DNA of 64,000 nt from the NCBI GenBank assembly GCA_037379345.1, contig CM074518.1, positions 2,790,001 to 2,854,000 on the forward strand, written 5' to 3'. This DNA comes from Perna viridis (lineage: Eukaryota). This document shows positions 21,201 to 33,200 of the stretch, piece after piece; within the stretch, counting starts at the first letter, position 1; every line of letters starts with the position of its first letter. The notes beneath the pieces are model-generated. The model worked only from the letters and a program-made list of their open reading frames with translations, made no database searches and had not been told where the DNA came from. The position numbers were made by a program, and so were the translations under genes.

Positions 21201-24200
21201 TGTTAAGTTAAGAAATTCCAATAAAGTATCAATATTATTGCTTGACCTTATTGCACTAAACAGAGAGACTCAGCTTTTGCCCAAAGAAAACTATCTCGAG
21301 AAAACTTGGAGGTAGAGAGAGCAACAGTAGATAAACTTGAGGCCTTGGAACAACAACGTAGATCCTCTATGCAACAATTCCGTAGGCCCTCCCTTGTTGA
21401 TGTTATACCTGATTGGCCAACACTACAACATAGGGAGGTTAAAAGAGAGGTAGATGAGAAATCGTTGTCACTAACACTAACATTGCAGCATCCTTATGCT
21501 TCTCCGTTTTATTTTCAAAATTTAATTTGAGTTATCTCCCTTACCTCATATTTTAATTTTAAGCATGCTCTCAGTTCATTGCTTTGATAATTGTTCTTCT
21601 ACTCATGTGCTTTATTTATAAACACTTATGAAGTGAAATTATAAATTTGGTAAATTAATTCTGGTATGTTATACTCATTTTTTATCTAAAATATCCAAAA
21701 ATCTTAAACCACTGGTAAAAAAATATTTAATATTCTATTCTAATAAATTTATATATGCTTTGACATCAGATAATATTTGGATAGCAGTAACATACTGAGA
21801 AACTAGTTTTCACATTATGGAGACAATAGGGGATGGTATTGTACTAATTGGTTAAAGTTTTTCTGTTGTGCAAGCATGATATTTCAATATAAGGAGTGCA
21901 GTGGTTATATAGGGGGTAGACAAACAGCTGAATAGTAGGATTAGTTGTGTCTTATTCAAGTTCTATTTTGGCTTTAATGTAGGGATAGATTTTTTGGATG
22001 GCTTTGCATTTACTATATTTATTGCTTTTTTTCAAATTCAGCTTTATATGGTTTTTTGTGTATGTGTTTGGCAAGAAATTGTATTGATTTATTATGTTTT
22101 TTATACCAGACTTGTAAGGTTGCTATAGTTTCCTCTCATCCACTGTTAGCAGTGTTAATGTTTAAGTCTTTATTTATCACTTTTCTTATTAAGTTATTTC
22201 ATCTTTTCATTTCTTACAAGTTTATTTTTCTTTTATTCTGAATTCTTTTTTCTCCATGGCTAAACTAATCTTTTCTAACTTTTACCTGTCTTCTCATGGT
22301 GTAGTATGAGACATCTATAGACAGAATGACCTTTGACCTTCATTTAGGCATGAAAATGTTTAATATACAGTTGTTCATTTGTGTTTCCATAGAAACCAGA
22401 CAAGTTCATGATAGAACTGGATGATGTCAAGGCTGTTGAAGGAGACAAAAAAGCTGCTTTTGAAAGTGAATTTTGTAAACCTAATGCCAAGGTCAAATGG
22501 TTTAAAAATAAACTGGAAATCTTTGCTGGACATAAATACCACTTTGAGAATGAGGACAAAAAATACAGACTTGTTATTAACAATGTCAAACTTGAGGATG
22601 GAGGGAAGTACACACTGGAATGTAACGGTGTTAAAACAGGAGCTTGGTTATATGTTGAAGGTATGTAGAATTAATCATTTCTAACCAATGCAGAAATAGA
22701 AAAAATATGTAGAATCAGAGAATCTGTTCAAACATGATTACTTAAAAGTTCCAAATTTCAATGTTACAACTGTAATAATTGTTACATTTGTAATACAATT
22801 GTTGATATCTTGTTTTAGCCAAAACGCCTGAGTATGGATTTACACAGAAACTCCCAGAGAAATATGAACAAACCAAGAGGAAGGAAGCTAACTTAGAGTG
22901 CTTTGTCAATGATACAAGAGCTCGAGTTAAATGGTTCAAAAATGGCCAACCAATCGAGGTATAGTAACAGTGTGTGTATAGATATTTTGTAGTTATTAGG
23001 TTTTGTTAAAGTTTGACTTGATTGGTTAGGCTATGAGATACTGAAAACCAACTTATTTTGGGGATGGTCTATTTTTGCTCATTTATTACAGGAATAAGAA
23101 AAAAAATTGAATAATTTATGTATAATTATTCAGTATTGTGTAAAAATGCAACAAAAGCCTCTACATAAATAAGTTGGTTGCAAATAGATTCATAATTCAA
23201 GGTCTCAGATTTTCAAAAGAAAGAAAAATTTGGGCAGTGATGTATTTTTCATAATTGTAAATTATTTAGAACAAGCTCTGCTTTATAATATGAAAAACTT
23301 GATACCAGTCTTGTTAAAGAGATTGCAGCAGGTCCCTAAAATCTGGTTTGATTTTTTAATTTCTCAAACACCTACCGATGCTATTATTATATTCTTACAA
23401 CCTGAATTTTGCATATCAACTTGAAAAGTTTTGATAAGTAAAATTTAAATTCCATTAAAACATGTATCTTTGCAAATTCTTTTCATTAAACATTTTTCAT
23501 TTTCTGTTAAACAGCATTTAACAGTCTGCATGATATTTATAAAGATTGGTACCAGAAGTCAATTATACAAAACTTTGTTAAAATTATGTCTTATTTCAAA
23601 TTTTACTGTCATACTAAATTACAAAGAAATTTTACATTGACTGCTTTTTTTGGGTTAGTTGCTGGGACTTTGGAGAGTAGATATTGAATGGTTATGATTT
23701 GTCTTGTTTGAAATAAAAGCAATTATTTGGTACATTGTATAAGAATTACTGTTTGTTTTGTAATAGTGATTTGGTCTGTTGGGAGATGACACAATAGAAT
23801 CTCATTTAATCATATTATTAGTGTTTGTAAATATGTAAAGTCATGCAAAGTTTAATCTTTATCTTGTAAGTAATCCAGCAAAGTTTAACCATAATCAAGG
23901 ATCCTTTAATAAATTAATGAAATTGAGAATTAATAATTTGATGTTAACTTATTTTAAGTAGGTGTTCCAATCATATTTCTTTGATTTTTGTCCAGTTCAT
24001 TATCAAAGGACACTTATCACAATTCAGGACTTCAAAAGAAAATTCTAAGTGATCAAATATCATACTTTTGGAAGAAAGTGTTGTGGAAGCATGGAATCTG
24101 ATTGGTCTTCATATCCGTCTTCACTTGCAATGTAATCAAAAATTTGAAAATCGTATCGAAATCTCTTTGGTATTACAGAGTTAGGTTTAGTCCTTGGTTT

Positions 24201-27200
24201 GTACATTTTATGGGAATGATTTGGTTTAAGTGGATTAGCCTCTGGTGGCTTACTTTTTATTTTTTTCCTGATCTTTGATGGATGAAACCCAACCATGCCA
24301 TGAGGTCCTTCTTCCACAGGTGCTAATGTCAGTCTGTTAGCCTGTGATCTAGTCTGAATATTTTTCATCCATGGTGGAACTGTAGATCTTGGTGAATCAT
24401 ATATTTGTGGATGTCCAGTCCCTCCAGACTCTAATTTTATATTTGGATCTATAAATTGTGTTGACTCGAACTTTGGTAAGTTGTTGCTTTTGATATGATG
24501 GTGAACTTTGGGGGGTTTGTTTGGCTTATGTCCACTCCATGGGATGGGTGAAGAATATGCTGCCCTTAACTTATGCTTAGCCAAGATGTCCTTTTCCAAA
24601 TATTGAAGTTTGCCCTGATTTTTCAGGTCATAAAGTGTTTCTCTTGCTACTGGCATTCGTTTCTTGATCTTTGTTTTTATGTATGGTCGACTAGATTCTG
24701 CAATCCTTGGCATAAAGTACCAATATAGTATTGTTAGAATAGAATTCAAACTTTGTTCAGATACCTTTCTAGTATTCCAAACTGCTGCTTTTACATCTGA
24801 TGCTGTTGCATTGTGGGAAATTCTTATTTTTTCTAGCCATCTATTTCCCAAAATGTTGAAAGTTTCTATGTCTTGAGGAGGAAGGAAGAAAATTGAATTT
24901 CGACAACTGATTCCTGATTCAAAGAGAACACTTTCATGATTTTCTCGGATTTCATTTCCTGCCACTAGAAGTCTGCTATATCTCAAGGGATATCCAGTTT
25001 TTAACTCAATTTTATGCTTAAAACTAGATATTGTTTGGTTGACTCTCAGATAAGTCTTGTAGATAACTCCATCTGGTGTATGGGCAAATACAGGAAAGGT
25101 TTCTTGTTTCAGAACTAGGGGAATTTCAAGGTCAAATACTGCATCCATTATTTTGCTGCTATTTGGAAGTTTCTGATTTCCAATAGTTAATTCATAAAGC
25201 GTTGCATTTGGTACTCCCATTTTTTCTAGTTTCTTTTTCAAATGTTTCACTGTTTTATTAGCAGATATTCTTAGATTTTCTATAATGCCATGTCCTATGC
25301 TTATTTTTAATGGAACTCCAAATACTATATCTCTATCAATTTGAGTCATGACAACATTCATGATAACTAAGTTATCATACTCCAGATGTCCCATGGGGGA
25401 GGAAAAATCAACTCTTTTACTGTTCTTATAAAGTCGTATAAGGTCAACAGGAATGTTTGTTAGCCCATGGAGCATGAATGCAAGAATAGACCAGCGATCA
25501 TATGGTGACACGGTCACAGAGTATCTCTCACCAGTTTCTGTCACTACATTAACAGTGGAAAGTCTCATGTTACTATGGTGAACTACGGTTGACAGGAGAA
25601 GTTTTTCTCCTGTGCGAATACCTAAGTATGCTATACAGAAATCCCAGTTTACTATTTTGTTTTTGTATTGAAGCACAAGAACATGGATTGGCACATATAA
25701 TTCATGAAGTCCTGCATCCTCTGGCCCATTTGAGCTGAAAGCCCTATTGAAAACTGCATATATTATATCCATTCCAGTGCTACATGGGTCTAAGTAAAAG
25801 CGGTAGTTCTTGCCCCAGAATGTTTCAACATTAATTAGCAAGTCAAAATGTGCTTGTATCATCACATACAATTTTGAATCATTTTTTATTCTATATTCAA
25901 ACAGTCTCCTATTATTTTCCAGGGCATTGTTTGAATACAAAATTTCTTGTCTCTCTACAGGTATTCCTTTCCTTCGTCGAATCAATGTTTTGATTTTTCG
26001 CACAGTCCAAGATAAGTCTACAGGAAGGTTAAATTTTGTTTTCAGTTGACTTATTTCAATATTTACACTGGCATTTTCCTCTGGCATCACCATGACAACA
26101 GACCCAGGTCTAACACTGTAAACTGTCTTCAGATTAACAGGTGATAGTTGGCCTGGACTGAGAATCCGAAGTTTATGCTGAAATCTTTGGAAACCTAAAT
26201 GTTTCTCAGCATACTCAATAATGTTATTAACCAGATATCTGTCAGGTTCAAAGATAGCAATGCTATCATATTTAGCAAAGGACCAAAGTGCTACATTTTG
26301 ACCTGCCAAGGGATGGAGGTGCATGAATTCAGTATTTTCATCAGTTTCAAAATGTTCAAAATCTGAGTTGTCATCATCTTCTGAGTCTGACATCCTCTCC
26401 TGCATATTCCGTAGATGTTGTCTTTGTAGCTGTCCATCATGACCAGGTCTCTAGAAACACAAAAAATAGTCAGAAATAACAAAATTTTCCTGAGGTTTGT
26501 TTTGATTTTTTGATGATTGAAACATGGTTTGGCTTGAGGAATATTTAATAGTTGTGATTTATAAAAACTGGATCCTTGACTGACTAAGAAAGCTTGTTTC
26601 ATGTTCTAAAAAGCTTCTTTCCTCTACTGTTAAAATTAGTTTTCTTCATTTCATTTGGAGATAGGATCTTGAATTAGTTGTTTCCTTTTTTATGCATACG
26701 TGTTTGTCAATAAAATATATTTATTTTAGTATCCAAATTTATTTTTTATGTTAATGATGAAAACTGTAAGATTAATGCCCATAAACAATGTAACAGGTAA
26801 AAATTGTTTTATTAGGCACCAGAAACATTGAGAAAAAACATTTAGACTTTTAAATAAGCAATTTTATATCATGAATAAATATAGAATAAGTATATCTTGT
26901 CTAAAACTTACTTGGTAATGAACTGGTAACACCATATCTGTCTCTCTGAATGGTCCATTCATAAAGTCGGCATTCATCGTACTAGATTTCTATGTCCTAC
27001 CCAAAACATTCATAAAGTCAACGTTCATCTTACATGATTTCTATGTCCTGCCCAAAACATTCATATTGACATTATGTATGTGAACACTATTACATATTTT
27101 GATTTCCTATATCAATGTTCCATATAAATTGTTTTCTCAGTCCACTAAATTCCATTTAAAACTCGTATGGTAAATAAATAAACTTAGCTATTCAATTTAA

Positions 27201-30200
27201 CCTGTTTGGGCAATTTAAGTGGATTGCTTATGTTTTTTAAAAAACCAATTTACCTTTTTAAAGCATTTAAAAATGATATGTTCCATTAGTAACTTCAAAA
27301 TGATATTCAATAATTAATACATTTTATAAAAATGTATGATTATTTTGTACTTGGAAAACAAATAAAGATTACTAAGGAGATAAACTTTATTTGTACTTTA
27401 GCTTCTGTTGTGTTGAATTAGAAATGTAAAAGTATATCAAATTCTAACCTTTGACATGAAGAATTTATCCATGGACATGTCTCTTATTAACTACACTGAA
27501 ACAAGTAATGTATGAATGGTGGTACACTGAGTTATTGATGTACCTTGCCAAATTTGAAGCTTATATCCAGTTAAGCTTCTGGTATCACAGGTACAAAATC
27601 CCTGTCGTGTCAGAGAACTTTACAAATCTGTTCAAATCACCTTCATAAATCAATTATTATTGGATACCAACACTGTAATCCCTCCTCTCGGTTCTTCTTA
27701 ACATCCAGTCCAATACTTTTGATTGAATCGGCTGTTTGTCATTTTCTCTTCAATAAATGCATTTTAAAGTCCTGATTAAATGCATTGTCAGGTTTTAGGT
27801 TATAAATTGACAAAAAAATGCTCTGCAACATACAGAGCACTTCTCCACATATTGAAAACCATGCACTAGAAATATTGAAAACATTTTAAAATTACTGCAT
27901 TAGATTTGAACACCTATTCAACAATAGAATGTTTATACTTCATCATAACCTTTTGTTGTGTGATTCAGTAATAAAAGTTCTCCTTCAAGTCGACAGTTGT
28001 CAGTTAAATTTAGATTGTGCAGTACATTAACTGTTGCCCCGTGGTTGCTATTTAGTTGTCCACGAACTCCTATTAAATATAAATTAATTGACAATTCAAT
28101 AGCTTGTTTGGCTTGTTGAAATTTATCCTAAAATGCCTTTGATTTGTTATCCAGTAAACCCAGTTAAGTGTATAGTTACCTCCATCAGTAGTAAAGTATG
28201 TTCTATTTATATTACTAAATTAAACAAAGTTTTTATAATCCTTCTCTTTGCCAAATACAGTGTACATGCTTCTAGAATTATGTCATGATATTATTCCTCT
28301 TACAATCTGATGCATTTATAATGTCCACTTCAACAAAATCTGATGACTAAAGCCTTAATGTCTTGTATAAATTAAATTTTGGTGTTAGATTGTTAAGATC
28401 CTAATTTGAATTGAAGTTACTTGTCAAATCAATTGATGATCAGTTCTCAAAACATTCTTTTATGGAATAGTTAATTTGATAAAAATCCAAGAGAGGGGAA
28501 TGTTTCACAACTTATGTAGAACATTCTTTGAATTTTTCCTGATGATTTTTTTTATGGTTTTAAGAAAAGTGTAAGGTAACATTTTCATAATTTTTTTTTT
28601 AAATTTGGTGTACTGTTTAATATTTTATATGGTAATTAACAAAAAAATATATGCGTTCCTTCATTAACCCCATTTTAAATTAAATTTTTAATTGAATGTA
28701 AACAGAACAAAGGCCAGTTTAAATGATATTTAACATTATATGGAATAAGATACCTGATAAGTACTGGTTCGTTAGGTCTGTTCACCATGTTACACTTTAA
28801 CACAAACATCTGTGGAAATATAAAGTGTGTTTAAATTAACTCTATTTGGTAACAACTGATTAAAGACTAGTAGACTAGCCATACATAACAATCCATTACC
28901 ATTATATTGTTATTAGTATCAGTTCTAGTATGGAGATGCATGTTGTCTAAGTAACCTTGCATTTAAAAAGGAATCTTTTTAAATAAAAAAGATAAGTATG
29001 ACCCATTGAAACTCTAGGTTATTGAAAATTAAATGATGGGTTTTGTAAGGTAAGTATGACCCATTGAAGCTGTAGGTTATTGAAAAGTAAATGATTGGTT
29101 TTGTAAGAAGAATTATTGCTTGTTTTGTATAGCTTAGTTTATAGATCTTTGCATGTTTTGTGATTTTAAAAATCTTGTTTTTTTTTCGATTTCAGGATTT
29201 TTCAGCTAAAATCATAGTAATATTATTGTTTGTCCATTCTTGTAGCTTCCAAAGCGAGGTACTCCTGAGGTATAGAAATAAAAACTACATGTATAATCCC
29301 ACTAAAGCCATCTTGTCTTAAAGAATCATTTATACCTACTTTTCAGATCACTTTTTTTTTTCATCTCCTCAACTTTTATTTCTGTCTTTTAAGTATAATT
29401 TTGATCACACTGCTGTTGTTTTTATTCATCACCTTTCTCTTAAGTTTCAACCTTGTAATTCAAACAAAGTTTTTAGTTTTCAGTTACAATCATGTTGGTT
29501 GTACAGATATTTTTGTCACGTGTGAAAGAGTTGTCTCCCCTCATCACTTCCTTTTCATGGCACTATAAACACACTAGTGAACTGTATCTGTATAATATTA
29601 CAGCTTAGAAAATAGCAAACTAAGAATATTTATAAATGTAATTATAACTCCATGTTTTATTTAATCATCTGCTTATGCTTTCATTGTCCTTTGTTGCTTG
29701 TACATTTAGTACAAAGCTTGTTCCTTATGTCATCAAAAAATTGAGTGAAACATTTCATATAATACCAGTAATATTATTCTTACTTATTTGTTTTTACTTT
29801 TGATATTATAATGATAAGTTTGGTCTTACTGAGTTGATAAGATATATTAGAAATAGTACATTTTCTGTGTAAACATGAGTTGAACTGTAGAAAAATAAAT
29901 GTTTTCTGTCAGTAACTAATCATGCTGACTTTTATCATCAGTAGTTGCTAATTTTGTTGTAAAGCCTGCCAATTCTACTTGTGTCCATTATCAAGCTTGA
30001 TCTTGTATTGTTTAACATATAAATACAAGGTTTGGGCTGAATTTCTTTGGCTTAGATGTCAAATGTTTTCTGTAGAATGTTTTAGGTTCATCACATTAAT
30101 TTTAAAGTTTAAAGTGATTTTGTTCATGAATGCAAATGATTTCTATAACTTATTTTTGTAACAAATAACATATTAAGACTAGATACTTTAATATCTATTC

Positions 30201-33200
30201 TGCTTCTTAGATATAAATCTTTATTGTGCTGATTCAATAGTGTATGTTCTGAATGTAACATTCAGTGAAGAAGTTCTCTATATTCTGGGAATAGTTCATT
30301 TAACATTACTTGTATTATTGCCTTCAGTACCAAGCTGGCAAGATGGAGATCCAACGTCGTGAGAATCGCTGTATCCTTAGAATCAAAGACTGTCAGCCTG
30401 AGGATGAAGGAGAATACACATGTACCTGTGGTGATGCCACAACTTCCTGTCAATTCAAAGTCACTGGTAAGAGGATGTTAATGACTTAAGTCATTGGAAA
30501 ATGAGAACTGACAATGCAAAATATTTATTTTGTATGTGATGCAGGTTCAAACATTAGATTTTATTGTTTCTAATTTCTTAAGTACTAATATAATATGATT
30601 GTTTTATGAATGAATTTTAATATCAAATCTACTATTCACTATACCATGAGTTCATCCTTGTATCAAAGCTTTCACTTAAATAAAAATGTCTAGGGTCTAT
30701 TCTAAGTTGACATCTATTTATAGATCCTGAATGGGACTTTATGAAGTTATTGGATGATGTTGAAGGAGTGGAAAGAGACAGAGCTGTATTTGAATGTGAT
30801 GTCAATGATCCTGAGGCAGAGGTCAAATGGTTCAGAGGTGACAAGGTAAGGTCAGGGGTCAAACAATAAAAACATCTTCATTTTAATTTCAGTAACTTTA
30901 TTTTTTTCTGGTCCACATTACATTATTCATCAATACGCTCTTGTTATATTATGTATGTAATCTGCAGAGAAGGTTTAGTTGCTTTTGAGAGATATCATAT
31001 GAGAATATTATTTTGAGCATGTCCCATCATCCTAAACTGCAGTATCTGATGTTATGCTACAATCCAATGTTTACATTATACCAGCCAGTACACATCTATA
31101 ATACAAACTGCTATCACTAGAGTCCTCCGTCACACATGTTATACACCAGTATGTTATATATATACAAGTACATGACTATAACCTCAGTGACACATGATAT
31201 ACACCAGTATGTTGTATATATACCAGTACATGATTATAACCTCAGTGACACATGTTATACACCAGTATGTTGTATATATACCAGTACTTGACTACAACCT
31301 CAGTGACACATGATATACACCAGTATGTTGTATATATACCAGTACTTGACTTTTACCTCCGTCACACATGTTATACACCAGTATGTTATATATATACCAG
31401 TACTTGACTACAACCTCAGTGACACATGATATACACCAGTATGCTGTATATATACCAGTACTTGACTATTACCTCAGTCACACATGTTATACACCAGTAT
31501 GTTGTATATATACCAGTACTTGACTATTACCTCAGTGACACATGATATACACCAGTATGTTGTATATATACCAGTACATGACTACAACCTCAGTGACACA
31601 TGATATACACCAGTATGTTGTATATATACCAGTACTTGACTATTACCTCCGTCACACATGTTATACACCAGTATGTTATATATATACCAGTACATGACTA
31701 TAACCTCAGTGACACATGATATACACCAGTATGTTGTATATATACCAGTCCTTGACTATTACCTCCGTCACACATGTTATACACCAGTATGTTATATATA
31801 TACCAGTACATGACTATAACCTCAGTGACACATGATATACACCAGTATGTTGTATATATACCAGTACATGATTACAACCTCAGTAACACATGATATACAC
31901 CAGTATGTTGTATAAATACCAGTACTTGACTATTACCTCAGTGACACATGATATACACCAGTATGTTGTATATATACCAGTACATGACTACAACCTCAGT
32001 GACACATGATATACACCAGTATGTTGTATATATACCAGTACTTGACTATTACCTCCGTCACACATGTTATACACCAGTATGTTATATATATATACCAGTA
32101 CACGACTATAACCTCAGTGACACATGATATACACCATTATGTTATATATATACCAGTACTTGACTATTACCTCCGTCACACGTTATACACCAGTATGTTG
32201 TATATATACCAGTACTTGACTATTACCTCCGTCACACATGATATACACCAGTATGTTGTATATATACCAGTACATGACTATAACCTTCGTCACACATGTT
32301 ATACACCAGTATGTTGTATATATACCAGTACATGACTACAACCTCAGTGACACATGATATACACCAGTATGTTGTATATATACCAGTACATGACTATAAC
32401 CTTCGTCACACATGTTATACACCAGTATGTTGTATATATACCAGTACTTGACTATTACCTCAGTGACACATGATATACACCAGTATGTTGTATATATACC
32501 AGTACATGACTACAACCTCAGTGACACCTGATATACACCAGTATGTTGTATATATACCAGTACTTGACTATTACCTCCGTCACACATGTTATACACCAGT
32601 ATGTTGTATATATACCAGTACATGACTATAACCTCAGTGACATGTTATACACCAGTATGTTGTATATATACCAGTACATGGCTATAACCTCAGTGACACA
32701 TGTTACCTCAGTCCTTCACACAGTTATTGATCCTATTGTTTGTTTATTTTCATCATAGATAGAGGTCATTGTCAACTCTTTGTTCTTTATGACTGTCATT
32801 AAATCATTCAAATTTATAGTTACATATGTTTTTCATCTTTTTGTTAACTATGCTGAATTTTTTTTTATAGCCAATATCCCTTGGAAAAACAACTAGAAAT
32901 AAACAAAAATATTTAATAGAGCCTTTTATTAAGAATGAATGAAGAGAAAAAAAAACAAGGAGTTGTCAATGTCTATGTGTGTTTCTCCTTATACATTCCA
33001 TGTGCCAATTTTCTAGGGTAAAGTGAAGGTAAGACCCCTTGTTGTACCTCTGTTATGTAGCCAATAGAAATCTAGATTTCCTTTCTTCTCCTAAAAAAAA
33101 GAATTAGAGGCTTATTTTTAGGGGTACATTAAAACAGCTATTTGGATTTTGGGAACTGATGTCGATTAAGGGCAAGGATAATATTTCATAACTTGGTTTC

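Follow-up and report, generated by a model that had tools for sequence, protein, structure and literature searches.

A conserved gene for a predicted chain of ubiquitin-like domains lies antisense within a twitchin-type intron of Perna viridis

The locus and the gene model

The 64,000-nucleotide stretch of the Perna viridis genome studied here (assembly GCA_037379345.1, contig CM074518.1, positions 2,790,001 to 2,854,000 of the forward strand), called the window below, holds a minus-strand gene whose product is predicted to consist largely of ubiquitin-like (Ubl) domains. This Ubl gene lies within a long intron of a plus-strand gene, the host, whose exons in the window encode I-set and Fn3 domains. 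The original prediction, made from the sequence alone, had reported a minus-strand open reading frame (ORF) at this place. The ORF is present and its G+C content (0.34–0.38) is above that of the surrounding intron DNA (0.26–0.29). Residue numbers throughout are those of the 781 amino acid (aa) ORF that begins at the first ATG in exon 2. The features of the two genes are:

24060-26405, minus strand: ORF called mechanically from the first ATG of exon 2, 781 aa
26912-26977, minus strand: coding exon 1, 22 codons, ATG at 26977, last codon CAA at 26912, by direct reading of the sequence
26451-26911, minus strand: phase-0 intron of the Ubl gene, 461 nucleotides (nt), with a GTAAGT donor from 26911, a polypyrimidine tract and an AG acceptor at 26452-26451
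24060-26450, minus strand: coding exon 2, 796 codons plus a stop at 24060-24062, carrying the whole Ubl array and the tail
22833-22958, plus strand: aligned part of host exon B, encoding the first half of an I-set Ig domain, profile positions 3-42
22959-30327, plus strand: host intron, 7,369 nt, donor GAG/GTATAG, acceptor TTCAG/TAC, enclosing the whole Ubl gene in antisense
30328-30468, plus strand: aligned part of host exon C, encoding the other half of that I-set domain, profile positions 45-85, expectation value (E) 1.7e-6

The frame remains open upstream of the first ATG of exon 2 as far as position 26450, which is a splice acceptor and exon boundary and not the start of the gene. Joining the two coding exons gives a product of ∼818 aa. 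In a tblastn search with the N-termini of two mytilid homologues, the exon-1 peptide encoded at 26965-26912 was 67% identical to residues 5–22 of the Mytilus galloprovincialis orthologue. The claim that the gene is intron-free thus fails: its N-terminal coding region is interrupted by a phase-0 intron, and the peptide of exon 1 has a conserved counterpart in Mytilus. All homology searches were run with exon 2, and the joined exons were used only for length and composition. By our estimate, which was not a formal computation, an open frame of ∼800 codons is much too long to have arisen by chance in DNA of such high AT content. A public protein collection contains a protein identical to the window product.

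The orthologous gene models of Mytilus, Pecten, Potamilus and Haliotis are not colinear in translation and are therefore intron-bearing. The array itself lies within one open exon at all eight of the loci checked by tblastn, and also in the Dimorphilus model. The single array exon, being common to all loci checked, is therefore ancestral and gives no sign of retroposition. It is virtually certain that this is a real, conserved protein-coding gene.

The start of exon 1 overlaps a 51-bp tandem repeat (26956-27065, 2.2 copies, 88% matches), so that a partial copy of the ATG-containing segment lies immediately upstream and adds further ATGs to the probable 5′ leader. A public 814-aa protein of a related mytilid (L006:1-120) has an N-terminus translated from the intron upstream of the exon-2 acceptor; this N-terminus is an artefact, because genes were called on unspliced DNA.

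Architecture of the protein

A full-length AlphaFold2 model was built on an alignment of 24 sequences. Its ordered part spans residues 36–570, with predicted local distance difference test (pLDDT) scores of 80–90, whilst residues 1–35 and 571–781 are disordered. Within the ordered part, the succession strand-strand-helix-strand-(strand)-strand occurs six times (residues 38-108, 112-183, 189-273, 283-351, 363-433 and 436-508) and is followed by a half unit (513-543) and a helix (550-568). The beta-grasp fold is a mixed sheet of strands 1, 2, 5, 3 and 4 packed on one helix, and U0, U2, U4 and U5 of the list below have their elements in the order expected for it. The spacings between first strands are 74, 77, 94, 80, 73 and 77 residues. 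The starts that had been proposed for further units after the ubiquitin-like one match the predicted beta-grasp units at 189, 283, 363 and 436, and a further unit lies at 38-108 and a partial one at 513-568, towards the two ends where degenerate units had been suspected. Together with the tail, the units are, all on the minus strand:

26076-26300: unit U0, residues 36-110, predicted beta-grasp without detectable ubiquitin sequence similarity
25848-26075: unit U1, residues 111-186, canonical ubiquitin fold
25578-25847: unit U2, residues 187-276, predicted beta-grasp interrupted by an insertion that follows helix 1
25332-25577: unit U3, residues 277-358, beta-grasp by structure search, without sequence signal
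25104-25331: unit U4, residues 359-434, predicted beta-grasp with a weak ubiquitin-clan sequence signal
24876-25103: unit U5, residues 435-510, predicted beta-grasp, pLDDT 82–90
24690-24875: partial unit U6, residues 511-572, with two strands and one helix followed by the long hydrophobic helix 550-568
24063-24689: disordered tail, residues 573-781, basic and rich in Pro and Lys, with a short acidic C-terminus

The ubiquitin resemblance first seen by eye at residues ∼112–186 is borne out by both sequence and structure. The whole protein matches the Pfam ubiquitin family PF00240 with 81.4 bits (E 4e-23), and U1 scanned alone scores 56.9 bits (E 1.8e-15) against a curated gathering cutoff of 25.4 bits, the sole unit above that threshold in a unit-by-unit scan. 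U1 is 24% identical to ubiquitin in sequence, and its model superimposes on ubiquitin chains with Z of 15–16 and a root-mean-square deviation (rmsd) of ∼1 Å over 74–76 residues (VIA-align). In a structure search that was independent of Foldseek and covered 48,161 chains, U3 (residues 95–170 of a sub-model) matched ubiquitin variants, the ISG15 C-terminal domain and the OASL Ubl with Z of 12–13.3 and rmsd of 1.5–2.2 Å over 71–77 residues. U3 also holds an invariant D303 and a near-invariant W305.

Sequence evidence for U4 and U5 is fainter. U5 gives a sub-threshold PF00240 match (21.8 bits, E 1.6e-4), and U4 gives weak Pfam matches to RAWUL (E 0.02) and Ubiquitin_2 (E 0.07). In profile–profile comparisons between units (hhalign), U1 and U4 are paired with a probability of 74% (E 2.8e-5 over 55 columns); the signals for U1–U5 and U4–U5 are faint, and every pair except U1–U4 falls at or below 15%. 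No Pfam match was obtained for U0, U2, U3, U6 or the tail in the unit-by-unit scan.

In the AlphaFold2 model, U0 has strands at 38-42, 49-52, 77-82 and 103-108 and a helix at 58-69 (pLDDT 81–88), and U2 has pLDDT 83–89 outside its insertion. U2 carries a family-invariant TFWG hairpin (T195-G198). It starts exactly 76 residues, one ubiquitin period, after U1, and its first hairpin is still ubiquitin-like: with phmmer against PDB sequences, residues 125-210 align to polyubiquitin from residue 13 of one repeat to residue 22 of the next. U6 has pLDDT 78–84, and its helix 550-568 holds W562, which is invariant in 25 family members. A transmembrane role for this helix was considered and rejected, as the uninterrupted hydrophobic run read from the sequence is only ∼10 residues.

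For the whole chain, Foldseek ranked highest in the PDB a linear tetra-ubiquitin, aligned over 404 columns (E 2.5e-22), and the five Ubl domains at the USP7 C-terminus, aligned over 535 columns. Language-model features of residues 187–600, which we treat as a lead only, point solely to multi-Ubl clusters (scores 0.84–0.88). The original prediction had counted five to seven divergent Ubl units. The model contains six complete units and one partial, of which U1 and U3 are identified by structure search, U4 and U5 have sequence support, U0 and U2 come from the model alone, and U6 is partial. A multi-Ubl architecture is thus highly probable.

The two ends of the protein have the composition originally described. 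The N-terminal head (residues 1–35) is acidic, with an isoelectric point (pI) of 4.05, and the ∼200-residue tail is basic (pI 10.0, 12% Pro, 18% Lys+Arg, pLDDT <50) and poorly conserved save for short motifs (alignment columns 650-983). Pfam scans found no catalytic or other known domain in the protein.

Cleavability and the ubiquitin-like surface of U1

U1 was mapped onto ubiquitin with a numbering offset of 112, taken from the PDB alignment. The equivalent positions are:

ubiquitin K27: U1 K139, invariant in the family
ubiquitin I44: U1 L156
ubiquitin K48: U1 N160
ubiquitin D52: U1 N164, invariant
ubiquitin Y59: U1 Y171
ubiquitin K63: U1 N175
ubiquitin H68: U1 Y180, His in many orthologues
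ubiquitin V70: U1 M182
ubiquitin G75-G76: F187-D188, directly after U1

The structural core of ubiquitin is kept in U1, with equivalents of K27 and Y59, as is an Ile44-type hydrophobic patch (L121, L156, Y/H180 and M182). U1 has no lysine at the positions of ubiquitin K11, K48 and K63. As first stated, no unit ends in Gly-Gly: the protein has a single such pair, which lies in the tail at residue 661. The protein closes with a helix and then a 209-residue tail ending Pro-Lys-Val, without a terminal Gly-Gly. The lack of Gly-Gly unit ends and of K11, K48 and K63 equivalents in U1 means that the protein can be neither cut to monomers nor conjugated, and it must therefore act as one intact chain. 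The statement that the gene is not a polyubiquitin precursor accordingly holds, its units being dissimilar and without RGG ends.

Conservation, selection and copy number

A word-indexed protein search returned 30 full-length matches (the identical protein and 29 homologues) with E down to 1e-107. The homologues include those of M. galloprovincialis (68% identity), four scallops, oysters, a unionid, Dreissena, Mya and the gastropod Batillaria. All are named ‘uncharacterized’, ‘hypothetical’ or carry the automatic label ‘polyubiquitin-C-like’, and searches of the literature on genes nested in twitchin, on six LOC numbers, on UniProt and locus-tag identifiers and on molluscan tandem Ubl proteins found nothing relevant, in keeping with the original remark that no named gene with this architecture was recognised.

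None of 24 aligned homologues contains a frameshift, and the alignment has few gaps, with high conservation between residues 36 and ∼590 and a variable tail. Against Mytilus, the proportions of nonsynonymous and synonymous differences in the core are pN = 0.154 and pS = 0.747; with synonymous sites saturated, dN/dS comes to ∼0.04–0.1, far from the value near 1 that the original prediction had named as evidence against a functional gene. U2 and U4 are the most constrained units (pN 0.08–0.12). The Ubl gene is under strong purifying selection.

The gene is single copy in the 723-Mb genome assembly, where the only other matches are two true polyubiquitin loci. These (C3:32288993-32290618 and C10:36154308-36155933) have open frames of 615–625 aa, with at least seven ubiquitin repeats matched, each 28–29% identical to U1. 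A transposon ORF was rejected as an identity for the Ubl gene because the gene is single copy.

A family hidden Markov model (HMM) covering residues 186–600, from which the canonical U1 was left out, was run against 1.84 billion representatives. Colinear full-length relatives stood well above the noise from multi-repeat ubiquitins. Those named via their clusters are from four species of Haliotis, Biomphalaria, Babylonia, the nemertean Lineus longissimus (1,454 aa) and the annelid Dimorphilus gyrociliatus (667 aa), all annotated ‘uncharacterized’. In six of six relatives scanned, the matched region is closely preceded by a single canonical ubiquitin domain, and the architecture is therefore shared. 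Six residues are invariant across 25 diverse members: K139, N164, W197, D303, G483 and W562. About a dozen further members fall by BLAST into annelid-like, nemertean-like and other mollusc-like sets, and word-indexed searches with the family alignment and with one orphan member added no further named taxa. No member from outside the lophotrochozoan phyla was identified in the profile and protein searches, which is not evidence of absence. On these sequence comparisons, this is an unnamed poly-Ubl family, represented among named taxa by molluscs, a nemertean and an annelid.

Some individual members differ from the window product. The L. longissimus orthologue (L009:10001-14365) is nearly double its length and lies in one exon, with the array at about residues 150–710 and no Pfam match outside it. 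The annotated Saccostrea echinata model (L003:9596-11929, 643 aa) starts ∼135 codons downstream of the start of the open frame and of similarity, and is probably truncated at its N-terminus. Many metagenome proteins of 1,000–2,400 aa match the U4–U5 part of the profile 8–21 times, and one of these long poly-Ubl proteins bears the JGI name ‘ubiquitin C’.

Conserved nesting within the host gene

The original prediction of an antisense gene nested in a twitchin-type intron, with intron boundaries at exactly 22959-30327 and an Ig domain split between the flanking exons, was correct in each respect. The intron interrupts a single I-set domain (profile positions 3–42 and 45–85 on either side), and both Ubl exons (24060-26977, minus strand) lie wholly inside it in the opposite orientation.

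Orthologues of exon B, at 49–81% identity, adjoin the Ubl gene in seven other genomes. Exons B and C both bracket the antisense Ubl gene in Mytilus, Pecten, Saccostrea, Haliotis and a bivalve-like genome from ENA (L005); in this last genome, an I-set exon lies on the opposite strand near the Ubl gene. The end of exon B and the start of exon C fall at the same codon in every case found, and the 3′ end of the Ubl gene lies 0.8–4.2 kb from the donor of exon B in all nested loci. The synteny that had been proposed as a check was therefore present, and deeper than expected. The host products with the Ubl gene antisense inside are:

Mytilus: 4,914 aa
Pecten: 4,826 aa
Saccostrea: 4,868 aa
Potamilus: 4,666 aa
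Haliotis rufescens: 5,047 aa
Lineus: 4,803 aa

Pfam records of I-set or Ig domains exist for the Mytilus, Saccostrea and Potamilus hosts only, and FN3 is on record for Potamilus. Mytilus twitchin has been described as a 530-kDa protein with 24 Ig and 15 Fn3 domains and a kinase (PMC12040844), and the host sizes (4,666–5,047 aa) and Ig/Fn3 content fit this description. We consider it almost certain that the nesting is conserved. The host–guest arrangement is older than the mollusc–nemertean split.

In D. gyrociliatus, the orthologue (L010:10001-12004) lies between an annexin gene and a Sushi/EGF gene and not in a giant Ig gene. The nesting has been lost in this compact, miniaturised genome.

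Interpretation

The explanation that we favour, with reasonable though far from full confidence, is that of a functional single-copy, two-exon gene encoding an intact multi-Ubl scaffold or adaptor and anciently nested in its host. The product would consist of a short acidic head, six complete and one partial Ubl beta-grasp domains without linkers, and a disordered basic tail of ∼200 aa. It would act non-covalently as an intact chain, with U1 docking on receptors for ubiquitin or Ubl domains, and with the divergent but highly conserved units U2–U6 and the short tail motifs holding other partners.

Polyubiquitin genes usually have a single array exon behind a 5′ intron. Because the 76-residue phase is kept and the single array exon likewise stands behind a 5′ intron, descent from an ancient polyubiquitin-type tandem array, and not from a recent retrocopy, is the most likely origin. 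The original suggestion of a polyubiquitin retrocopy is thus untenable as a recent event, since the family, the array exon and the site in twitchin are common to molluscs and a nemertean, whilst an origin from a polyubiquitin-type array is plausible. By analogy with TIMP, which lies antisense within synapsin in an arrangement conserved across Metazoa (PMC2825198), the nesting has probably persisted chiefly through selection against breakpoints inside the host. A regulatory link between the Ubl gene and twitchin is possible.

Several points weigh against parts of this explanation. The scaffold or adaptor mechanism, which we put forward tentatively and would not be surprised to see replaced, is argued from residue conservation in U1 and from analogy; of the original proposal of a scaffold, it is the non-cleavable array of six to seven Ubl units that stands, the role itself being inferred. 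The assignment of U0 and U2 as Ubl domains is a prediction from the AlphaFold topology of one model. A U2–U3 sub-model built from a 7-sequence alignment had a mean pLDDT of 57, with U2 below 50, and only U3 was usable. The hhalign comparison among units gave no similarity for U0, U2, U3 and U6, so that repeat ancestry of those units is not demonstrable from sequence. Two Logan contigs that were considered as spliced transcripts were both rejected as unspliced or genomic: L006 (3,192 nt) contains intron sequence and the acceptor directly upstream of exon 2, and L007 is colinear with the window, including host exons. The provisional naming of the host as twitchin, and not another giant Ig/Fn3 protein, depends on the domain content of the window, the product size and the published description (PMC12040844). 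In Potamilus and Lineus, exon B was found 1–2 kb beyond the 3′ end of the Ubl gene, the other flank being beyond the fetched DNA. Finally, as the Ubl gene lies outside twitchin in Dimorphilus, nesting is not required for the gene to persist.

This last observation also bears on the best-surviving alternative, in which the Ubl gene and its host are functionally coupled. The product would then be a muscle protein working with twitchin or the thick filament, either as a mechanically robust chain of beads or as an adaptor for sarcomeric turnover, or else antisense transcription would tune twitchin expression or splicing, for example through polymerase collision; in each variant, that link would have kept the nesting. 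Occupation of the same intron since before the mollusc–nemertean divergence is consistent with such coupling, as is the position of the 3′ end of the gene, always 0.8–4.2 kb from the exon B donor. Polyubiquitin is mechanically stable, and a tandem beta-grasp chain resembles the bead-chain design of the Ig/Fn3 host. However, the gene persists outside twitchin in Dimorphilus, and the basic disordered tail and ubiquitin-like patch suggest no particular sarcomeric role. Moreover, deeply conserved nested pairs such as SYN-TIMP exist without a functional link between host and guest (PMC2825198). We thus regard coupling as unlikely, if worth keeping in view. Its most ambitious form is less likely again: an ancient, functionally coupled poly-Ubl/twitchin unit in lophotrochozoans, in which the intact chain of seven mechanically stable ubiquitin folds would be a new muscle component of the thick filament or catch apparatus, or a dedicated turnover adaptor, with expression of the two genes tied by a shared transcription unit on opposite strands.

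A somewhat poorer prospect still is that the protein mimics linear (Met1-linked) polyubiquitin, as a decoy occupying UBAN/NZF-type receptors or deubiquitinases and so damping or scaffolding innate-immune or stress signalling. The best Foldseek matches are indeed linear ubiquitin chains of four, three and two units, in complex with HOIL-1L, ABIN, optineurin and OTULIN, and the U1–U2 junction keeps the exact 76-residue period of polyubiquitin without a cleavable Gly-Gly. Against this, TM-scores on the query are 0.10–0.15, and the PDB matches reflect only the fold and the tandem arrangement. Ubiquitin-like surface residues occur only in U1, and recognition across the junction by linear-chain readers is improbable.

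The placing of the whole array in one exon within AT-rich intronic DNA might have pointed to a recently retrocopied polyubiquitin, a pseudogene in decay or the ORF of a transposon. This reading is refuted by the conserved 5′ coding intron (26451-26911), the single copy in the genome, the ancestral state of the single-exon array, orthologues that occupy this site in bivalves, a gastropod and a nemertean alike, and strong purifying selection on a gene intact in at least 24 species. Independent insertion of the orthologues is untenable, given their common intron position and the colinear alignment of their proteins.

Known Ubl domains occur one at a time, as pairs or attached to enzymes. The architecture seen here, in which six to seven non-cleavable Ubl folds are fused into an independent chain, is undescribed; each unit has been conserved between species for hundreds of millions of years and is yet unlike its neighbours. 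The gene is present in molluscs of economic or medical relevance (mussels, scallops, oysters, abalone and the schistosome host Biomphalaria). With its host, it forms a second clear cross-phylum nested pair beside TIMP in synapsin, a precise orthology marker for twitchin introns, and a test case for whether nesting is kept by passive constraint or by regulatory coupling. The understanding of ubiquitin signalling is unchanged until a partner or phenotype is found; if the protein were a muscle component coupled to twitchin, the ubiquitin fold would serve there as a structural element and not as a modifier, a new class of use for it.

Comparison with known systems

A close parallel in layout is polyubiquitin of the UBB/UBC type, in which linkerless beta-grasp units likewise follow one another head to tail, all encoded by one unbroken exon that is preceded by a 5′ intron; the passage from U1 into the first hairpin of U2 keeps the unbroken 76-residue phase of such a chain. 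The repeats of polyubiquitin are near-identical, whereas the poly-Ubl units, save for U1 and U4, are mutually unrecognisable in sequence. Release of monomers by deubiquitinases needs Arg-Gly-Gly at the repeat ends, and no poly-Ubl unit ends in this way. The poly-Ubl protein also adds an acidic head and a 200-aa basic tail, and its U1 lacks the K11, K48 and K63 equivalents. Its units diverge from each other but each is kept between species, the opposite of the pattern in polyubiquitin.

The C-terminal HUBL region of USP7/HAUSP (PDB 2ylm) is similar in carrying several divergent, non-conjugatable Ubl folds in one chain as a platform for protein interactions. The Foldseek alignment to it (535 columns, E 9e-15) has a sequence identity of 9–10%, indicating a shared fold only. 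The five Ubl domains of USP7 follow and regulate a protease, whereas the poly-Ubl protein has no catalytic domain. ISG15, FAT10 and the C-terminus of OASL also consist of fused Ubl domains without internal cleavage, and U3 matches the ISG15 C-terminal domain and the OASL Ubl with Z of 13. These proteins have two units each, and ISG15 and FAT10 are vertebrate immune modifiers that end in a conjugatable Gly-Gly; the poly-Ubl protein has six to seven units and no terminal Gly-Gly, and its named members are molluscan, nemertean and annelid.

As a nested pair, Ubl/twitchin was not found in the literature searched. It differs from SYN-TIMP in the identity of both host and guest, but the two arrangements are alike in having a reversed guest within a host intron, at an equivalent position in the host across phyla, and in having been lost in some lineages: the absence of TIMP from the synapsin locus of nematodes (PMC2825198) parallels the loss of nesting in Dimorphilus.

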